DNA from: Podarcis bocagei
Taxonomy: Eukaryota
Reading direction: 5' to 3' (one strand)
Assembly: GCA_964188305.1 (NCBI GenBank)
Contig: OZ076885.1
DNA length: 64,000 bases
This document shows positions 24,044-38,930 of the stretch, piece after piece. Made by a program: the position numbers and the translations under genes. Under the pieces are notes generated by a model. That model ran no database searches, had not been told where the DNA came from, and saw nothing but the letters and a program-made list of their open reading frames with translations. Position 1 is the stretch's first letter, and every line of letters starts with the position of its first letter.

Positions 24044-24232
24044 ACCTCAAAGTAGCTTGGTATAGCAAAGACAAAGAGATCAAGCCATCCCGCTTCTTTA
24101 GGATGACTCAGTTTGAAGACACTTTCCAGCTTGAGATTGCAGAAGCATACCCAGAGGATGAAGGAATTTACACCTTTGTCGCAGGCAATTCTGTTGGCCA
24201 GGTGTCAAGTACGGCTGCACTGAAGCTGGAAG
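24044..24232 (+). CDS. TTN: titin exon ~44, Ig I15 C-terminal part (DLKVAWYSKDKEIKPSRFFRM...)
   Basis: gagcag| and g|gtacag, 189 nt. Confidence 0.94.
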
Positions 24233-25637: not shown

Positions 25638-26009
25638 GCTTTAAGGTTGAAGAAGTTACCTCACATTCCCAAAGGCATGTTTCTTCATCTTTCTCCATTA
25701 AGAAGGACCCCGTTGCCCAAAGGCCCAACTTTATCCAGCCCATCTCAAGCTGCAGCGTTTGCAGCGGGGAAACAGTCAGATTCCAAGCCAGGGTTTCCGC
25801 CATGCCGAAACCAGAAATCCTCTGGTTTCATAATCAACAGCTAATGTTGCCAACCAAAGGCGTAGTTTTCCATTTTGATGAGTCGACAGGCACAGCCACA
25901 TTGATAATAGTAGATGCTTTCTCAGAAAATGCCGGGCAGTACTCTTGCAAAGCAAGAAATAGTGCTGGAGATGCAACTTGCATGGCTACACTTACAGTGA
26001 CTGCTGAAG
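25638..26009 (+). CDS. TTN: titin Novex-1 exon (exon 45), one Ig
   Basis: ttcag| and g|gtaaag, 372 nt, phase 1-1; GETVRFQARVSAMPKPEILWFHNQQL...VVFHFDESTG matches Novex-1. Confidence 0.93.
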
Positions 26010-26678: not shown

Positions 26679-27257
26679 TGCAAGCCTTAGATAGGCTAAG
26701 TTCTGGGAAAGATGTAAAAGAGTCTATCCAGGCAAAATCAGAAGTGCATATTGCTTCCCCCTTTGCAAAGAAGGAAACTCAAGTGTATGTAAAAGAAATT
26801 AAGTCCAAGCAGGAGGCATCACGGGAAATGGTTGTGCAGGCCTTTGAACACCTTTCTGGAACTTCTACTGTGAAAGCTGAGATTGGGAAGGAAGGAGAAA
26901 GCTTCAGTGCCACTGCCATTACTCAGAAGTCAGAAAGCACCACGATATCTGCAACCTCCATTCAAGTGCTGAGAGAGGCGCCCCCAAAGATTCTTCTGAA
27001 ACTTCATGATCTCACTGTGAGATGCGGTGACACCGCTCAGTTTATGTGCGCTTTGGAAAGTGAAAACTTCTCGGACGTTTTGTGGTCCCACGAGGGAGAA
27101 ACGTTACAGGAATCTGAACGAATAAGGCTGTCACGAAATGGAAGCGTTCTCTTCCTCACTATAAGCAATGTCCAACTTTTAGATCAAGGATTGTACAGCT
27201 GTACTGTTCGTAACGACTATGGAGAAGTAACAACAACTGCTATACTAACCGTAGAAG
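26679..27257 (+). CDS. TTN: titin Novex-2 exon (exon 46), unique linker plus one Ig
   Basis: cacag| and g|gtggtt, 579 nt; begins VQALDRLSSGKDV and contains CGDTAQF and NVQLLDQGLYSC as in Novex-2. Confidence 0.93.
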
Positions 27258-28432
27258 GTGGTTATCTGATTTTTAACATTATGTGACGTTCTCTCATTTC
27301 ATCCTCATCATCACTGCCTATAGCTCCTGTGCTAGTATTTAATTTAGAATTACAGTTTTGAGTTCCATTTCCCCCCAACCCTCTACATTTCGGGCTCTAT
27401 TCATAAAGTAACCACATGCACAGGTACTCTGTGCAATTTGCTTGTAAAGTAGGAACCATACCTTCCCCTGCCATGTTACATCTCCAAAAGCAAGGACTAG
27501 TCAATTTGCAGTGAAATACTGAAGCAATTTGGAAGTTTCCTATAGGATCAAAGAGAAGTACAAGAAATTGTTTACAATTATTTCTCCTATTAATTTTTGT
27601 GAAAGTTTTTTTTAAAAAAAACAAAAACAAAAAACAGCTACCGTAGTCTAACTTAATGTAGGCTATTCTAGTTTACAAAGGATTTTATGCAGATATTGAC
27701 TGCCATTAACAGAGCCATTCTCTGAATGCCCTTTTCCACCCATACCAGCTTTCTTTTAAAATTGGAATTTTGCACCTTTTTCCATTCTTTTATTGACCAC
27801 AACAATTTGTTACGGTTAAGGCAAAGAAACTTTCACGTGTCATGTGCCTTGCTTTTCCAACCAACACCAGATGATGAAGGTGCCACAAATGTTTTTACCT
27901 ATAGTCCTCTCTTGTGTTTAAGCAATGAAGACTAAGAATTGACTTTTGGTTTTCTTCTCATGGCATGGAAATAGCTGCACGATTAGCACACAGAAGAGTA
28001 GGAACAACAACCTGAACCCCAAACAGTGCCATATATCCTGCTTTTACAAACTGGTGGATTTCCTGACTTTTCTACACATCATTGAAAAGCATTGCAGCTG
28101 CAGCTGCCTTCTAGGCTATGCAGAAGAAGCCTTGACTAAAACTGAAGATGTCCTTGTAAAAATTACTGTGGGCCAATCCTATTTCCTCTGATGTCAGTGA
28201 CGCAAATCCTGTGGATCTAATTGCACCTTCTATTTAACCTGGCATGAATAGAGCCCTTAAATGTGGAACAGGATAGTATAAAAGACTGGAAATTCAATTG
28301 TTTTTTGCACTAACACGCTGAACATTCTTTTTACCATACTAATGGCTTTTATATACATATATATTGCTGAGTATAGATTTTTTTTTTTTGCTGCAAAACA
28401 TCTAATCTTATCCTAACTTTATTCTTGCCTAG

Positions 28433-28954
28433 CTAAAGAAGCACAAGCCAGAACAGTAACAAAAATTACCCTTGAATCAGATACTAAAAGCATTAAAACA
28501 AGCAAAGAGTCTCAGATTAAAACAGTCTATGAATATAAACAAGAGTCTTCCACGGAAACGACGAGCGTGGCAATATCTACAGCCCAAAAAGCACAAGAAG
28601 CTGAGAAACCGAGGATCAGAGACTACTACCCTGATGTTGTGCCGTGCGAAGACATCGCCGAAACTGGTGCCACAGTACCAGTCTTCCTTGAAACTCTGCC
28701 CCCAGAAAGCTTTGTCAAAGAAGGGGATCATGTCTCGCTGTTCTGTGTAATCAAGGGCTTCCCTACACCTTGTGTCATCTGGCTGTATAACCAGCTAATA
28801 GTTGAGGATTCCGCATTGTGCTCTTTAAGGCACGATGGCCCACTGTGCAGTTTAAACTTACTGAAAGTTAAGGAGAATCAGAGGGGTATATACAAGTGCA
28901 GAATAGTTAATTCTGCGGGACAAGCCGAGTGCAGCACACATCTGAGAGTGACAG
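28433..28954 (+). CDS. TTN: additional Novex-like titin cassette exon (T/S/K/E-rich linker plus one I-set Ig)
   Basis: cctaac branch point, pyrimidine tract, tag| acceptor; cag|gttggc donor; 522 nt, phase 1-1, no stop; Ig signature PVFL..EGDHVSLFCVIKGFPTPCVIWLYN..GIYKCRIVNSAGQAECSTHLRV. Confidence 0.85.
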
Positions 28955-29357
28955 GTTGGCAACTGCATGTTCCTTCCATATACTCCTCTTGCGTACCGTC
29001 GTTGAAACCTGTTCAATCCACAGTCCGTGATATAATGAAGCGGCTGTGGATTGTTGAATATTTTCCTCATGGTGTTAAAGGCATGTTAAAGGCATGTTGA
29101 ATTAGAAAAAGAAAGAGAGGGAGAGGGTGGGGAGAGGGAAAGGCTCCTTTAAAATGCTGTGGGGGGAAATCCCCAATACTTTAGCATCCTCCCACTATTT
29201 GTTTTCAACTTATCAGGTACTTCCTGGCATGTATGTGTATGTATGTATGTATGTTTGTGTGGTTTTTTTCTCCCCCTATCAATGCATCATTTTTATATTC
29301 TTCTCTTGCAACATTCAACTCGCTTTCCATTAAATCACACTTTTATTTTTATTACAG

Positions 29358-29414
29358 CTCTGGAAAGAGTTCTGCAGGAGAAGATAGAACAACAGATTGA
29401 AATGGAAGTGAAAG
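29358..29414 (+). CDS. TTN: titin exon 47 (ALERVLQEKIEQQIEMEVK)
   Basis: tacag| and g|gtacag, 57 nt; resembles human APESILHERIEQEIEMEMK. Confidence 0.92.
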
Positions 29415-30121
29415 GTACAGTCGCACACAAACGTTTATATGGAAAGGAAGGTTTAGCATAAAAAAAAAACCAGTAACCCCTTTGAAAAGCTGATGCGTAT
29501 GACCAAGAAAGCAAAACATATTCTGAAGCATATCTGAATATGCTGCATGTTTTGTTTTAATATGCTCAGGATAACCTGCATTATTACAAAAAGGATACAA
29601 GTTTTAAAGTCCATTTAAAACTTTTCATTTTCACAGATTTGCCCGTCTTTACTTTCACGTCGTGCTATGCAGCTGGTTGCAAAAGCTTTTCTTTCGTATA
29701 CCTTCTTGTAATGCATGGGACAATTTTAGACTGAATTGCTTCAGATGGTTTCAGAACACATTAGTCCTCTAACATGAATGAGTTGGTCAAAAACCATGGG
29801 CTGGCATCTGTTTAAGATGCAACACTTTGCAAGTTGGGAAAGGGGCCTGTTTCCATTGTCGCCCTCCCATTTCATGAACATGATATTAATTCTCCTTTAT
29901 GGAAATTCTTACACTGGCTTGCAGATAGCATAGTTGGGCCATGTTGCTTGCTTTCTTTCCTTTTTTCTTTTTTTGCATAACATTGTGAAGTTAGCAGCTG
30001 TATTAGTTCGAATAAACGCCTTCTCATTTTGTTTTAGCAAATTACTTACAGTTGACTTTTTTTTCATATCTTTGAAAAAATATCTTTTCTATTGTTTGAC
30101 CATTTTAACCCACAATCAAAG

Positions 30122-30160
30122 GGATCAGAAAGGGCGTTTATTCTACTGTCTGCAAGTCAG
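30122..30160 (+). CDS. candidate 39-nt in-frame micro-exon (GIRKGVYSTVCKS)
   Basis: caaag| acceptor after T-rich tract and tttaac, strong cag|gtaaga donor, symmetric phase 1, open frame; no homology support available to me. Confidence 0.4.
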
Positions 30161-30549
30161 GTAAGATTCCCCTCCCCTTCTTTGCAAAGAAGAAATGCAA
30201 AAAAAAAATTACAAAAAAAATAAAAAAGCTTTCCAGGCAGTAAAACATGCACCCACAGGAACATGTCATTTTGAGATTCATTTTGCTTGTTGATGAAGAA
30301 ATTTCCGCAGTTGGAAGAAAGAACCGACAGCGAACGATTTTCGTGTCAGAATCTTTAAAACAGAGCAAGGCGTTGCGTTTATTCGAACAAATATGGTGAG
30401 TGAATTTTTTTTTAATGGATTTGTGATGAATCTGTTGCATGCTCATTATTTAATTTCATTTATAGCTATTTCATTTCTTTTCATTTCTTTTCCCAACTGT
30501 GTGATGGAAAGGACGGAGTACGCTGTAATGTAATGGTATTCTTTTGCAG

Positions 30550-33500
30550 AACTGTTCTTCGGTGAAGAGCCAGAATATGCAGAAAACCCGGCTGGCAAAC
30601 AGGCTGCTTCTGATGATTCCGTAGATCTTCCGCAACATGGATCTCTCCCGGATCTGAAGGGCACAAGTGGAATGTCATTTATGCATTCCTGGCCTGAGAA
30701 ACAGAAACCTTCTTTCACACAAAAGTTAAAGTATCGGTCTGTTATGGCTGGAGAGCCAGTTGTTTTCCAGTGCAAATTGAGTGCCCTTCCTTTGCCCCAA
30801 ATAACATGGTACCATAACAACAGGCAAATCCCCCAAAGTCTGCGAAGGCGAATAAAGAGTGAGAGCTGCATGGATATGCACAGCTCCAGTCTAGAGGTAA
30901 AAGAAGTTCAGGAAAGGGACTCAGGGAGTTACAGGGTTTTTGCTATTAACAGTGAGGGTTCAGCTGAGTCCACTGCTTCATTGTTGGTAGCACATGGTGA
31001 CAAACAAAATGCCAAATACCTAGAGTTTTTGAGACAGTCAGAGAGTACTTGTGAACGCATAGAGCATCTGGTGCAGAAAAGGAGAGGCGATAGGCTCAAA
31101 GTTGATCTGCGGTGTATTGGTTCTCCATTTGATAAGAAGCAGGAAACCGAGAAAGCGCTGAGAGCTTTTTCTCCTACCAAAGGGATGGTGAGGACCATAA
31201 GCTTTGAAAGCCTCTCGTCCTTAAGAAAAGGATTTGTATACGATAAGGATTGGGTAAGAAACAGGCGTGCAGGTAGGGGGTGTAGTGAGGGAGAGGCTTT
31301 GCTTGACGAGGAAACAAAAGTAAAGTTGCAGCGACTTCGCGAGGCAAAAAAAGCCATGCTGGAAAAGAAAAAAGTGCTTCTATCACAGGGATCGACAGAG
31401 GAACACCTTCCCTCTGCGAAAATTGTAGGAATTGGAAATAAAAGAGGCCCGTTGGCTCGTTCAATCTGTGCAGCATCTCATGTAGAGACAAAGGGACTTG
31501 CTTTCCAAACTATAGAGCAGATTAATGAAAAGGCCATGTTACCGACAGCGTCAGGCACTAAAGAAGTTACTGTAGGAAGTTCTAACAGGGAGCTTGAGAA
31601 AACATCAGAAAAATTTCAGGTTAGAATGGAACGGATCCTGGGCCTTCCTGGACCTCCTCAGATTCTCCAGGATTTTCCTGATAAAAGCAATAGGGGAGGA
31701 ATGTTCCGGAGACAGGAGGTAGTAGCCTCTAAAGGGAACGTGAAGCCACAAGTTCCAGAAAAAGATCCAAAGGCAATTGGGAACACAAGATGGATGAACT
31801 ATACTTATACCCATGGAAAATCAGAAGAAGCAAGAATGGATACTCAAGACTTCAAGGCGACACAAACCATTAAGAAAAACCCCTCTCCCCTGGTATATGT
31901 ACTTTTGACTGATGATGTCAGTGAGAGAGAGAAAGATGATGTCAGTGTGAGAGAGAAAGATGATGTCAATGAGAGAGGGAAACCTGATATGATGATGTCT
32001 GATACAATCACATTGAACATTAATGAACCTGCGCCTGTTTTTGAGATCAGGGAAATGAGCAAAACTGTAGAAATGGCAATGTCAGTAAACAAATGCTCCC
32101 TTGAAACTGAAGAGTCTGCGTTGGCTGAGGTCACTGAAACAGAAACAGAGATAGCAGAACCACCTGACAAATTGGTGAGGCCTCTTCCAAAATATCTGGA
32201 GCCATGCCCCCCTTCCTTTGTTCATGAAATTGAATCGCAAGAAGTAAGCGAAGGAGAGAGCTGTATTTTTAATTGTGATTTCCAAGGCCATCCACAGGTC
32301 ACAGTCACTTGGTATAACAATGACAAGCCGCTGTCACGTAACCAAGAATGTAACATCAGAACCACAGAAAATAGTTCTACCCTGACATTCTCCACCATTG
32401 TCCGTGATCAGGAAGGCTCCATTACTTGTGTGATATTTAACCAGCACGGGACTGCTACAAGTTCAGGAACGCTAAAAGTGAAAGTAAAGGAAAAGCCTGA
32501 ATTTGAACCATTCAGTATATGTAAAGTTGAGCTTTCACCAGACTATGCGGAAGAGGAAGAGGAACTCAGTTTGGCATTTGAGTATTCAAAAAAAGATGAA
32601 CCTGATTTAAGTATGGATGGCAGAGCCACTCTCCTGCCTCCACAGATCAACCTGCCCAGACCTTGCATTTCTGATCCAGATCTGCTTTCACTTCCTGTGG
32701 AAATAAAAATAACCGCTCCAACCCCAACTCCAGAGCAAGATGAAGAATTTAAAGAATTAACTCAGTTTGTTGAGTTTGTGCCTGAAGAACCCCCTGAAGA
32801 ACAAACTTCTGCAGGACTAAAGCATAAGTTTAAATTTTCATTTGATGTGGCTCATGAACCCCCCAAAATCTTAAAAGAAATTCAACAACACGTTAGATGT
32901 AGAGAAGGGGATTCGGTGGTACTTGAATGCTTAATATCTGCAGAACCACTGCCAATTGTAACATGGCTGCAGAATGATGGGATTTTAATCCCCACTGAAA
33001 AGTTTTACTTTGAGGAGGGAGATGGCGTTTATAGGTTGCACATTTGCAAGGTTTCCATATCTGATGCTGGCACGTACAAATGTGTTGCCGAAAACAAAGC
33101 TGGTATAGTCGAAACTGTTTGTTATCTTTCAGTTGATCCCACCGTGGAAATGTTTTCTGATGAAACTGAGCTCAAAGCTGTCCAAAGCCAAGTCAGAGGG
33201 ACTCAGGACCAGATTGCAAAAGAACATTTGGGGAGTTATTTTGAATCCTCAGTAGGACTTACGGAAAGTAGTTTTAGCAATAAGGCGTATTCTGTAAGCC
33301 AGCAGTTCCACAGTGTTAGTAAACTGGATTTCAGAGGGGAAGAAACAGGTAGACCAGCCCAGGAAATGGAATCCCAGCTGCCAAATTATCTAAATGATGT
33401 AATGAAGTCTCTACTTGCTGATGAAAGTGAACACCCACATTTCCAGATCTGGGAGCAAAAAGAAGTATATAAAGAGATGGAGTCAAATGCAAAAGAAGAA

Positions 33501-36500
33501 CAAAAGGTAGCCAGTATTTCAGAAATTTTAGCAGACACTCCACTTGTTGAGGAATTTAGAGATACAGCTGCTGAACAAGCCAAAGTAGAAAGCACATATA
33601 AACATGCAGCTATGGCAATATCATCAAGCTGTCAATTTGAAATGGTTGTAGAGAGTCATACGGAAAGAGAGAAGTCAGTTACAGAAGAAGACATTTCTGT
33701 AAGTCATGATGTAAAAGATGAAGGGGAAACTGTAAGAGATATATTTGAGAAGATGCAGAAGATTTCTAAAGATCAGGAATTCACACTAGCATACCTGGAA
33801 CCAGAATCGGAGAGTCTTCAGTGTGGACCAACTCAAGGTATATCACACGAGGAAATACCTTCAAGTGAGATAATCACAGACATACCATTTAAGGAAGTTA
33901 AAGAACAAATCTGCACTTTTGAGCAGGAGTTAAGTGCAAAAGAATCTATGGATCATAGGTTTTCCACACTGCTGCAAGAAGACAGTGATATCCATGAGAA
34001 GGATCAATGTTTTACTGATATATTAAGCAAGAATTCTCAGGATCAGTCAGCCATAGAAGAGAGAAGTATGTTACATCTGCAAAATATAAACAATGAACTC
34101 CAAAGTGCACCTAAGGAAGAACAACTTGACGATGAGGTTGTAAACAAAGAAAATCTGCAGGAGGCAGTAGCCAATGAACAGCAAGAACTGTTCAGAGTAG
34201 AAAAAGAGCAAGCATTCAGAAGTTCTATCTCTGACAAAGAGAAAGACACTTTGATCCATGAGGAAAAGTTCACTAGCTTTGGTGAGGGGAAAGAGAAGGA
34301 AATCCATTGTGGTGAAGAATTGGTAGGAAAAGCAGATGTAAGTGTGCCTGAATTTGTATTTGATTTAAAACAAATGCTTACTATTGAAGACAACGTAGAT
34401 AAGAATGCTCAAGAACAAACTGAAACTCGGGAACTCATAGGCCCAAGCTCAATTGCTGGCAAACTTGATATCTCACTTGATGGAATGCCGGTTCATGCAG
34501 ATACAGAAACTGCTGATGAACAACAAAACAGACTTAAGTCAGAGGAAGTGTATGCCAAAGAAAAATGTTTGGTTTCTGAAATAATACAAGCTAATACAAA
34601 CAAAATCACAGAATCAGCACAAATGGCCATATCAGTTCTAGAACAAAGATTGGATTCTAGTCAAGGTATTTCTAAAGAGGGTGAACTTGTAAAGGAAGCA
34701 AATTATGCCCAAGAAGATGCATTATGCCTAGAGAAGGAAGAATTTGGTTTACATCCAGCTTCCTTAGGCACAGAAACTGTTGTTGAGGAACGAGAGGAAA
34801 TCGTTATCAAAGAACTTTCAGATTTTGAAAGAACAGACCTAGGCAAGATAATAGAAAGTGCAGAAGTTGACACATCAGCTGAGAGTTATAGCCAGGATAT
34901 CAACAAAGAGAAGGAACTGGGAGAAGGAATATTTGATTTAAAACAACTTTCTCTGCATGTAGAAAATGATAGTCAAAACCAGGATGATGTCCTTGTGAAA
35001 GCTCTGCATTCTGGTTCTGAAGAAATGAAACTAGATGTCAACAAAACCCCAGAAATTGTACAATCTCCCACTTTGTTTCTAGAGCAAAAAAGAGCTTCTC
35101 AACAAGAGCTTTCCCAAGACACTGAACCAGTAAAGACAGAATATAGTTTCAAGGAAGCTATCTTATCCTTTGAAGAAGAATTTTCCTCCAAACAATCTAA
35201 CTTAGAAATTGTTGTTCAAGAGGAAGTTCACATTGAGGAAAAACAGACTCATGAAAAGGATCAAGATTCTGTTTTTACTGTTCCAGACATAGAAATTATT
35301 GGGAGGAAATACGTTAAAACTGAATATTCAGTTGCTGAAAGCCTGGAAACTGACGTTGCTGAACATGCACACAAAAAATCGGATTTAGAGGTTTCCAAAA
35401 TAAATGAAACTATAAAGGAAGAAAGTGGTGCACTGCAACAATCATTACCCCCTAAAAATGGCATTTTTGACTTAAAGCAAGCTTACTCAGATATAGAAAA
35501 AAATAGCCACCTACCAGAGACAGAAGAAAGATACTTAAAAAACCTCTATTCCGCTTCTGGAGTTCAGGCTGATACACAGAGTACCATGGAAAATGCACGT
35601 CAAATAATGCATTCTTGCCAAAAAGATTCCTTCTCTTTGAAAACCATGATGGAAGAAGAAAATGTTCAGGAACGTGCATCCCCAGAAAACAAAGACATTG
35701 ATTTAAAATTAGCTTTTCTGAATCTAGAAAATGTTGATCAACAGCAAGAAGAGAAGTTGCCACAGGGGCAAATACCTCTCAAATTCCTGTATTCTGCTTC
35801 AGAGGAAATGGAAGCCTTTCAAGGGCAGCAGCTGAAATCCACTGAAAGCAATGTCCTCTACAAGAGCAGCGACCACAAAGAATGCACCCTGTCCCCAGGG
35901 AAAGAACTACAAACGCAAGAGCAAATGTTTGATCTGAAAGCACACGCTGCATCTTTATCACAAGGCTTTTCATTGAAGGAGGCTGAAACATTACCAGAGA
36001 AAGAAGTGGGTTCCTTTAATCTGAGGTCGGCTTTTGAGACGATGGGTACAGAGACAGAGAGTTTCATAAAACAGCTACAGAAGGCAAGCGTACCAGAGGA
36101 AGGAGTTTCTCTAAGTGAGGAACTTCGTCAGAGCTATAAGGCGCGGCTGGAGGGAGATAATTCCCTAGAGCAAAAATTACAAGCGGAAGCAGAGGTGACA
36201 GTGACACAAATACTGAAGAAGGCCTTAGAAACGATTAGCCTTTCTACTGAACAGGAGCCTGCTACAAAACGGCATTGCGATCAGGAGGGGGAAATTTCTG
36301 AGGAGAAAGTGCTTAGGATGCCAGATGAAGCCTTTCTGTGGGGGCAGCCAGAACCCATTCCTCTCAGTCAGTATTTTCAAAACCAAGTGAAAGAAACTGG
36401 TGTCCTCGAAGCTGATAGTTTCATATCTGATTTGAAAAAAGCTGCACATGGAAAGAAGCCTCAAAGCGTTCATGAAACAGGGGGAGAAAAGGCACGTGTT

Positions 36501-38930
36501 ACTGAGCAAACCATTATCAAAGCGAGGAGCTCTTCCACTGAGGGGGCTACTGATATCGAGAAGCCTTTTGATAGCCAAATAATGCCTGACAAACAACCAT
36601 CATCACACAGCTCAGCCGAGGAACCCTCGTTGGCCCAGTTCCTTCTTTCTTTAAAAGATGAATCACTTATAAGCCAGGGAGGTGTGACAGGAGAATGTGA
36701 AACTACTGAATTCATGAATCCTCCTCTAGGAAATCTAACTGAAGGGGCTACCAAAGAAACTACTCTTCACGCTCAAGAACTTCCTACTCCTCCTCATGAA
36801 GGAGCAGATTTCTCTCTTACAAAGTATTTGCTTGCTGCCAGAGAACAGGAGATCCCAGTTGTCAGAGAGAGCTCATCCAGGACTCTGACCAGGGAGGGAT
36901 CTATCACATCCTTGGAAGTTGAAGATGTTACATTTAGCACCGTTTATGATTATTACAAACAACAGCAAGAACTGACCCGCCCTTTTTCTCCCGAGTCAGA
37001 AATGTCTATTGATATTGACAGCATGAGCGGAGACGAAATGGTAGAGGCTGAGGGATTCTACACACCACCGTCGTCAGTGGATAATTTTGAATCTCCCATG
37101 TCTTTTGAGTCTTATCACACACCAATTGGCAGCCCGGAACGATATTCTACACCTTCAGAGGAACGATACTCTACACCATCAGAGGAGCGATATTCTACAC
37201 CGTCAGAGGAACGATATTCTACACCATCAGAGGAGCGATATTCTACACCATCTGCAGAGTCAAACAGAACTTCAGTGAGGTCTCCTGCAAATCTAGTAAG
37301 GGGGAGTACCCCACCAGAACGTTATCAGACACCCCGTGGCTCTCGTTTGCAACACAGGAGCTCTTCTCTTGAAGAGCTACGTGCTGAAATGTTTGGTACA
37401 CCTTGTGAAGCATTGGAACCAAAGGGAAACGAAATTCCCCCTGCATTTATTAAGCCATTGACTAAAAGAAAAATCTATGAGAATACCACATTGCGTTTTA
37501 TTGCCGAGGTCATAGGGATTCCCATACCTGATGTGAAATGGTATAGAAATAAGTCATTGCTTGAGCAAGATGAAAGGGTCAAAATACAAAAAGAAGGTGA
37601 TGTTTGTATCTTAGAAATCCGCAACATTCAAAAAACAGACGGAGGGGAATATATGTGCCATGCAATAAATATCATAGGCGAATCCAAGAATATCGCACAA
37701 GTACAAGTGTTACCCCATGATGGAAGAGCTTTGGCTCTTCCTCCTCCAGTAACTCATCAACATGTCATAGAGTTTGATATAGAACAAGGGTCAGCATCAC
37801 GAACACCTTCGCCTCAGGAAATTCTCCTGGAAGTGGAGCTGGATGAAACTGAGATTAAGGAATGTGAGAAGCAAGTGAAAATAGCCACTATTCCTGAACT
37901 CACTTCTGATAATCAAAGTATGATTGTGTCTCTTGATGTGCTCCCTTTATCTCTGGTGGAACACACAACGGCTTCTTTTGGGAAAGAGAACGAAGATGTT
38001 ACAATTGACTTTGAAGTCACCGAGATGCCTCCACGCTTTACCACCCCTGTCTTTGACATAGAGGTTCCAGAAAAATCTGAGGCATTGTTTCATTGTACAG
38101 TCTCGGGCTGTCCTACCCCAGTAGTGCAGTGGTTTAAGGCAAATCAGTGCATTTCTTCAGACGCTTTGAAGTACGCTGTTAGAAGTGAGAATGGAAGTCA
38201 TAGTCTTAAAATTCAGAATGTACAGCATTCTGATAGTGGCATGTATTTGTGTAAGGCTGTTAATGCTGTTGGAGAAGCTATATGCAGGTGCTTGTTAGCT
38301 GTAACCGAGGGCCAAGGGGCTCTTGCAGTGACCAATGATGGAAGTCAGACAGATTTAAGTTTGGATAGCACTAGTGGTAGGCCTCAAAAGATTGATTTGC
38401 TTGTTGATAACACTATCCAAAATGGCAACCAGACAGAAATAGAGCTGGAGTTTGAGTTTGAAGGTGACACTGATGATTCTCAGAAAGCTGTTAAATTGGT
38501 AGCTGTTACAGAACAGGAGCAGGAAGAGGAAGGAGAAGCATGTGTAAATATTAACTTTGATGTATTTGCTGAACCATCCAAAGAAGAGCAGATTGAATTT
38601 AAAGGTGAGAGCACAGACAGCTGCAGCTTTGAATTTCAAGTTACAGAAGCACCTCCAAAGTTTATGAAACATATTTCCGATTGTGCTTCTTTCAAGGGTA
38701 CCTCTGCAAGTTTCCAGTGTTTAGTAGTTGGTTCTCCAAAACCGGCAATAAGCTGGTTTAAAAATGGGGTGTTGATTCACGAAGAGAGATACTGTGTGGA
38801 GGAAAGTCAGGAAGGTTGTCACAGTCTGACTATAAGAAGCTTAGTCCAAACTGATGAAGGCGAGTATAAGTGTGTAGCAACAAACAAAGCAGGGACTGCC
38901 TACAGCAGTGCTTCGTTAACAATCTGCTAA
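30550..38930 (+). CDS. TTN: titin Novex-3 alternative terminal exon (exon 48), ~2793 codons, six Ig domains, ends at TAA
   Basis: tttgcag| phase-1 acceptor in frame with ORF 30672..38930; starts ELF, contains KPSFTQKL, ERYSTP repeats, TPSPQEI, ends ASLTIC*. Confidence 0.96.
31911..31982 (+). repeat. 24-nt coding tandem repeat x3 (DDVSEREK/DDVSVREK/DDVNERGK)
   Basis: gatgatgtcagtgagagagagaaa unit, three near-identical copies. Confidence 0.9.
37137..37256 (+). repeat. 24-nt coding tandem repeat x5 (ERYSTPSE) in Novex-3
   Basis: gaacgatattctacaccatcagag unit with mostly synonymous differences. Confidence 0.95.

Follow-up and report, generated by a model that had tools for sequence, protein, structure and literature searches.

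A candidate fourth Novex-type Ig exon of titin between Novex-2 and exon 47, conserved from shark to lizard

Introduction

Maps of titin isoforms have been built on the mammalian gene, in which three Novex exons are recognised. Novex-1 is a symmetric alternative exon whose Ig domain is preceded by a short N-terminal extension only, and its use has been documented by RT-PCR in many species. Novex-2 is a phase 1-1 exon in which a unique linker of roughly 100 residues is followed by one I-set Ig. Novex-3, which belongs to the same cluster and is specific to certain isoforms, is a terminal exon of 8.4 kb that carries a stop codon and 3′ UTR of its own and truncates titin.

The Novex region of chicken, lizard, and frog was studied by Chen 2018 (PMC5852582), where exon 48′ was described as an overlooked conserved element between exons 47 and 48. 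It is 85 or 100 nt long, shifts the reading frame, and is conserved with human. Intron 46 was treated in that work as a single intron, the exon tables of human, mouse, chicken, lizard, and frog list no further exon within it, and RT-PCR on chicken heart across exons 44–48, 45–49, and 46–49 gave no product containing such an exon (Chen 2018, PMC5852582). Nothing is placed between exons 46 and 47 in the published exon tables for human, pig, rat, and mouse either (Chen 2018, PMC5852582), and the elephant-shark connectin paper reports only Novex-I to III. Another system of comparison is provided by the titin Ig domains I67 and I69 (PDB 2rik, 3b43), in which a triad of Cys residues in strands B, F, and G allows disulfide isomerisation; this triad is enriched in alternatively spliced I-band domains (Giganti 2018, PMC5766482).

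In this study, a 64,000-nt stretch of the genome of the lizard Podarcis bocagei (contig OZ076885.1, assembly GCA_964188305.1; hereafter the window) was analysed. The original prediction, made from the sequence alone, had proposed an extra Novex-type exon between Novex-2 and exon 47. Similar to exon 48′, this exon would be an overlooked conserved element of the Novex region; however, it is 522 nt long, in frame, and situated between exons 46 and 47. Literature searches on a fourth Novex exon, on Novex exons of chicken titin, and on RBFOX together with Novex revealed no description of it, while Granzier 2007 on the chicken titin gene may mention the exon. Apparently, it has not been described in the literature as a titin exon.

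Genomic position and exon structure

The neighbouring exons could all be located separately on the forward strand of the window, as had been stated in the original prediction. Exon 44 (24044–24232, 189 nt) is followed by Novex-1, the human exon 45 (25638–26009, 372 nt), by Novex-2, the human exon 46, with its linker and Ig (26679–27257, 579 nt), by the new exon, by exon 47 (29358–29414, 57 nt, phase 1-1), and by the Novex-3 terminal exon, the human exon 48 (30550–38930, approximately 8.4 kb). Bird-like and squamate-like loci showed the same order. For exons 44, 45, and 47, the sizes agree with those in the lizard column of Table 1 of Chen 2018 (PMC5852582), and the size of exon 44, a possible upstream splice partner of the new exon, is the same in all species of that table. 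Exon 47, the in-frame downstream partner, is conserved 370–430 nt downstream of the new exon, with an intron of 403 nt in the window. In two of the other loci examined, L002 and L016, exon 47 is 57 nt long, versus 48 nt given for frog (Chen 2018, PMC5852582).

The new exon occupies positions 28433–28954 of the forward strand and was found to be an intact open frame of 522 nt in phase 1-1, as predicted, with 173 complete codons and no stop. It is symmetric and in frame with exon 44, Novex-1, Novex-2, and the 57-nt exon 47. The predicted upstream signals (28412–28432) were also present in the sequence, consisting of a branch-point-like CCTAAC at 28412–28417, a pyrimidine tract, and a TAG acceptor. 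At the 3′ end, the exon reads ...ACAG|GTTGGC, and this donor (CAG|GUUGGC) is weak rather than textbook, with U at +3 and C at +6.

Linker and Ig domain encoded by the exon

The first half of the exon (28433–28672) encodes a T/S/K/E-rich linker of approximately 80 residues, which ends in a conserved YYPDVVPCE motif, and the second half (28673–28954) encodes an I-set Ig with Cys residues in strands B, F, and G (C104, C155, and C166) and further Cys. The Pfam I-set model (PF07679) matched residues 87–172 with an E value of 3.9e-16 and a score of 59.3 bits against a cutoff of 23.7. These assignments, together with the seven Cys counted in the translation, bear out the linker of about 80 residues and the Cys-rich Ig that had been proposed. 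In an AlphaFold2 model computed from a 15-sequence alignment, residues 1–73 were disordered (pLDDT <50), and residues ~80–173 formed an eight-strand Ig sandwich. Within the linker, conservation from shark or gar to lizard extends to the N-terminal KEAQAK..TKITLESDTKS and to the YYPDVVPC motif; YYPDVVPCE, which shark and lizard share, may serve as a docking site.

The closest solved chains for the new Ig were titin I65–I70 and I67–I69, and the triad domains I67 and I69 were its best matches in both sequence and fold. C104, C155, and C166 fall within the predicted strands 100–107, 151–158, and 163–172, so the modelled Cys of strands B, F, and G would lie at places equivalent to those of the I67/I69 triad; these three Cys are kept in nearly all orthologues. 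However, the identity to I67 and I69 is only about 30%, and, unlike those domains, the new exon carries the extra conserved C113 and C137 in the Ig and C70 in the linker.

Among the Novex exons, Novex-2 is the closest in organization, as it shares the gene region, the 1-1 phase, and the succession of a unique linker and one I-set Ig with the new exon, to which it is adjacent and with which it is co-spliced in bird, gar, and shark gene models. Nevertheless, the Ig domains of the two exons are only 23% identical, no similarity was found between their linkers, and Novex-2 has neither the Cys of strands B, F, and G nor the downstream GCAUG cluster that are present in the new exon. Novex-1 is also a symmetric Ig exon of this cluster and is alternatively used, but its Ig is only 28% identical to the new one. 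The exon is thus distinct from both Novex-1 and Novex-2 while having the linker-plus-Ig layout of the latter, in agreement with the original prediction. A recent duplication of either exon was considered as its origin and rejected in view of these identities.

Orthologues, age, and selection

Orthologues were sought by a HMMER scan of 1.84 billion representative proteins and by two word-indexed searches, and all matches were locally re-scored. The HMMER scan mostly returned multi-Ig proteins, while a handful of short proteins matched the linker as well as the Ig. Local re-scoring separated orthologues, with 50–97% identity and at least 140 bits, from any other Ig, which reached at most 45% identity and 69 bits. 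The orthologues included those of fishes (the sevengill shark Heptranchias perlo, XP_067843003; spotted gar, XP_015214368; and reedfish, A0A8C4SB43), turtles (Gopherus and Pelusios), at least seven birds (Balearica, Spheniscus, Rissa, Pluvialis, Heliangelus, Chlamydotis, and Melopsittacus), and several squamates. A maximum-likelihood tree constructed from the exon peptides followed the species tree, with shark, gar, and reedfish placed opposite the tetrapods. Since orthologues occur in shark, gar, and reedfish, the exon is not a gain of sauropsids, which had been offered as one of two histories in the original prediction. The distribution of orthologues places its origin no later than the common ancestor of jawed vertebrates. 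A loss in mammals, the other proposed history, is suggested only by the exon tables for human, pig, rat, and mouse mentioned above.

At the nucleotide level, ten genomic loci were compared, namely the window and nine loci from Logan assemblies. In every one, the exon was 519, 522, or 525 nt long and free of stops, and both the AG acceptor and the GT donor were retained. The stops or frameshifts in orthologous lizard sequence that would have spoken against the exon were therefore not seen in any of the ten loci, squamate-like ones included. The last 15 nt before the exon (ttattcttRcctag) were the same throughout, positions 28413–28432 showed a mean identity of 0.94, and the 24 nt from the donor onward were nearly the same. 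The upstream CTAAC was found in eight of the loci (the window and seven squamate-, bird-, and archelosaur-like loci), being replaced in the most distant ones, L002 and L016. Such retention of frame, length, and both splice sites in ten genomic loci is far beyond chance, and 28433–28954 almost certainly represents a real protein-coding exon of titin, judging from its sequence and that of its orthologues.

The dN/dS values ranged from 0.17 to 0.36 across all 45 locus pairs; this calculation, which had been suggested as a check on the exon, revealed purifying selection. By this measure of substitution, the exon is translated and functional, with selection acting on the protein. The alternative that it is an unexpressed relic open reading frame without function is hardly credible. 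No run on record as RNA was found among those that hold it, as a relic would have it, but the open frame, the lengths in multiples of three, the dN/dS values, and the splice signals that are the same from shark to lizard make a chance persistence impossible, and the comparative data effectively refute this alternative.

Between lizard and bird, the protein encoded by the new exon is 71% identical, compared to 78% for Novex-1 and 57–59% for Novex-2, and the corresponding dS values are approximately 0.5, 0.43–0.54, and approximately 1.1. The new exon is therefore much better conserved than Novex-2 and evolves at a rate similar to that of Novex-1, with which it shares a similarly lowered dS (about 0.45–0.55 in lizard–bird comparisons, against ~1.1 for Novex-2). 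This low synonymous divergence suggests an additional constraint at the RNA level on both Novex-1 and the new exon.

Two side observations concern the more distant sequences. The loci L002 (Logan SRR32377442) and L016 (SRR17272384) form a long-branched clade inside the tetrapod group, and in both the linker Cys of YYPDVVPCE is changed to Tyr. In the Heptranchias perlo protein XP_067843003, residues ~135–235 form an additional Ig between the Novex-2 linker and the Novex-2 Ig that is absent from birds and lizards; this sequence may represent a further Novex-type Ig in cartilaginous fish.

The Logan contigs of about 10 kb were also considered as possible transcripts. This was rejected because no poly(A) tail was seen at their 3′ ends, L002 continues well past likely signals, and similar contigs extend upstream through Novex-1 and Novex-2 with the introns included; the contigs were thus treated as genomic. 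Those carrying the new exon are colinear with the genome, introns included, and among the sequencing runs that hold the exon, none is on record as RNA. Several small assemblies, from four related species, contain parts of the exon; this is suggestive, but it does not amount to evidence of splicing. When the crane model, restricted to the exon, was used as the query, the candidates of 256–815 aa were genome-annotation models only, and no spliced partial ORFs of this size carrying the exon were found among the Logan assemblies.

Representation in public gene models

The original prediction had cautioned that the exon might already be part of bird or reptile gene models. It is indeed present in models of birds, turtles, gar, and shark, where it is misnamed as part of a stand-alone gene or garbled. 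In RefSeq and GenBank, Novex-2 and the new exon appear together as separate genes named MLCK-like, MyBP-H-like, myopalladin-like, twitchin-like, or VSIG10-like (XP_075611892, XP_054066394, XP_071603330, XP_010125343, XP_015214368, XP_067843003, KAM6259273, and KAM6398072). In the bird, gar, and shark models, Novex-2 is joined to precisely the acceptor of the new exon. In the reedfish model, the new Ig is followed by the exon-47 peptide, the join being made from a donor 20 codons beyond the one that corresponds to 28954. The donor corresponding to 28954 itself is used by no database model, and all NCBI models run past it to a stop. In the Ensembl models of Gopherus, Pelusios, and Melopsittacus, half of the new Ig is fused to a Novex-3 Ig through non-canonical joins. 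The misnamed and fused public models are probably annotation artefacts, and the mislabelled RefSeq and Ensembl genes can now be corrected.

Taken at face value, the stand-alone models would describe a small gene nested in titin, in which an internal promoter drives a free two-Ig protein made of Novex-2 and the new exon. Telokin arises inside MYLK in a comparable manner, and the RefSeq pipelines independently call a stand-alone protein of 322–541 aa in birds, gar, and shark. However, translation in these models begins simply at the first ATG inside Novex-1 or inside the linker of Novex-2, at sites that vary from one species to another. The new exon has the acceptor, phase, and flanking signals of an exon internal to titin, and RNA support for the Chlamydotis model, which lies on a 152-kb scaffold, was probably slight or absent. 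A nested gene of this kind, proposed by analogy, is accordingly very improbable.

Donor site and downstream intron

The most conserved part of the locus lies outside the coding region. Identity over the ten loci peaked at 0.99 in 28953–28972, that is, the donor and the next 20 nt, where the sequence reads CAG|GUUGGCAACUGCAUGUUCCUUCCA. In the window, the weak 5′ splice site GTTGGC is followed by UGCAUG (28964–28969) and a UUCCUUCC run, all within 28955–28980. A second conserved island at 29053–29112, with an identity of 0.75–0.84, carries the tandem GGCATGT..AAAGGCATGT (GGCAUGU..AAAGGCAUGU in the RNA), with GCATG at 29081 and 29092. All ten loci carried UGCAUG at +10, and nine also had the GCAUG copies near +130 and +140, both of which are lost in L016. 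The forward strand of the 403-nt intron contains four GCATG, while approximately 0.55 would be expected from the window-wide rate.

The conservation past the donor has a direct bearing on the manner in which the exon is used. One reading is that the donor usually remains unused and that 23–48 read-through codons complete an alternative terminal exon, with the transcript ending close by. The product would be a short "Novex-4" titin that ends after the new Ig, comparable to the Novex-3 form but shorter. All eight NCBI models read through the donor to a nearby stop, the donor is weak, and the first eight to nine read-through codons (WQLHVPS.Y) do not change between fish and birds. In addition, truncated Novex-2 forms with "intron 46 retention" were reported from chicken and frog heart (Chen 2018, PMC5852582), and these might include the exon. 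On the other hand, the read-through residues GWQLHV, which follow the Ig in the shark, gar, reedfish, and bird models alike, are explained by the bases of the donor region. Beyond about 27 nt past the donor, the loci differ by 4- and 19-nt indels, and the stop lies at variable positions 23–48 codons downstream, so the tail is not kept as coding sequence. A search of the 370–430-nt intron for AATAAA and ATTAAA found neither hexamer in the three bird-like loci (L005, L013, and L014), nor in L003, L004, and L015. A coding C-terminal tail GWQLHVPS.Y was therefore rejected, as its frame is not kept, its stop positions vary, and a poly(A) signal is missing in several loci. The invariant bases after the donor are better read as a 5′ splice site with UGCAUG than as a coding tail, and a cassette would agree with the 1-1 phase and with the in-frame exon 47 conserved some 400 nt further downstream. 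Compared to the 8.4 kb of Novex-3, the new exon is also a symmetric exon of only 522 nt with no conserved poly(A) signal after it. A terminal exon is thus unlikely, although it was kept as the main rival because no model or read shows the 28954 donor in use.

More broadly, the exon could mark the end of a short titin product of non-mammalian jawed vertebrates that had so far escaped notice, either a truncated "Novex-4" or a free Novex-2-plus-Ig protein from an internal start, as the stand-alone NCBI models would have it, and this too is rather doubtful. If it were true, the ultra-conserved donor and UGCAUG region would act as a switch between onward splicing and termination.

It may also be asked whether the exon is simply a constitutive part of non-mammalian titin that has been overlooked by gene models and papers alike. 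Its strong conservation and its integrity in every locus would agree with this, but neither of the RT-PCR products 44-47-48 and 45-47-49 from chicken heart contains it (Chen 2018, PMC5852582), and regulated exons are marked by features seen here, namely a weak donor, flanking introns of high conservation, and a lowered dS. Constitutive use is therefore improbable.

The weak donor, the 1-1 symmetry, the lowered synonymous divergence, and the conserved flanking introns together form the usual signature of a regulated cassette exon. A regulated cassette is probably the best overall explanation of the new exon, as far as can be judged from these sequence features. The (U)GCAUG motif is the recognition element of RBFOX proteins, which favour the inclusion of an alternative exon when their sites lie immediately downstream of it. 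In the present locus, conserved (U)GCAUG elements lie within about 300 nt downstream, as is found for RBFOX-enhanced cassette exons. Control of the new exon by RBFOX is a plausible proposal on these motifs, with the balance about even.

Under regulated cassette use, a fourth Novex-type exon would slot between exon 44, Novex-1, or Novex-2 on the upstream side and exon 47 on the downstream side, leaving the frame unchanged. Its inclusion would extend the proximal I-band, immediately ahead of the N2B element, by about 80 disordered residues and one I-band-type Ig, and would thereby be expected to alter the titin spring. This inclusion would be regulated, and most likely enhanced in muscle by RBFOX bound downstream. 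The location in the TTN exon 44–47/N2B segment, the coding strand, the symmetric phase, the I-set Ig, and the purifying selection are those of a Novex-type exon, and on these structural features the new exon is assigned to that type.

An exon that has stayed open and under selection since the ancestor of shark and lizard, is better conserved than Novex-2, and has its own candidate splicing-control elements would imply a titin isoform of the proximal I-band of which comparative muscle biology has so far taken no account. If mammals lost the exon, this would bear on the change of the cardiac and skeletal titin spring in the mammalian lineage.

Conservation outside the exons was also seen further downstream, where a block of approximately 460 nt in the intron between exon 47 and Novex-3 (29968–30424) aligned at 70% with the most distant locus, L002 (1858–2265), as well as the coding exons did. 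The region of the conserved exon 48′ described in Chen 2018 probably lies within this block.
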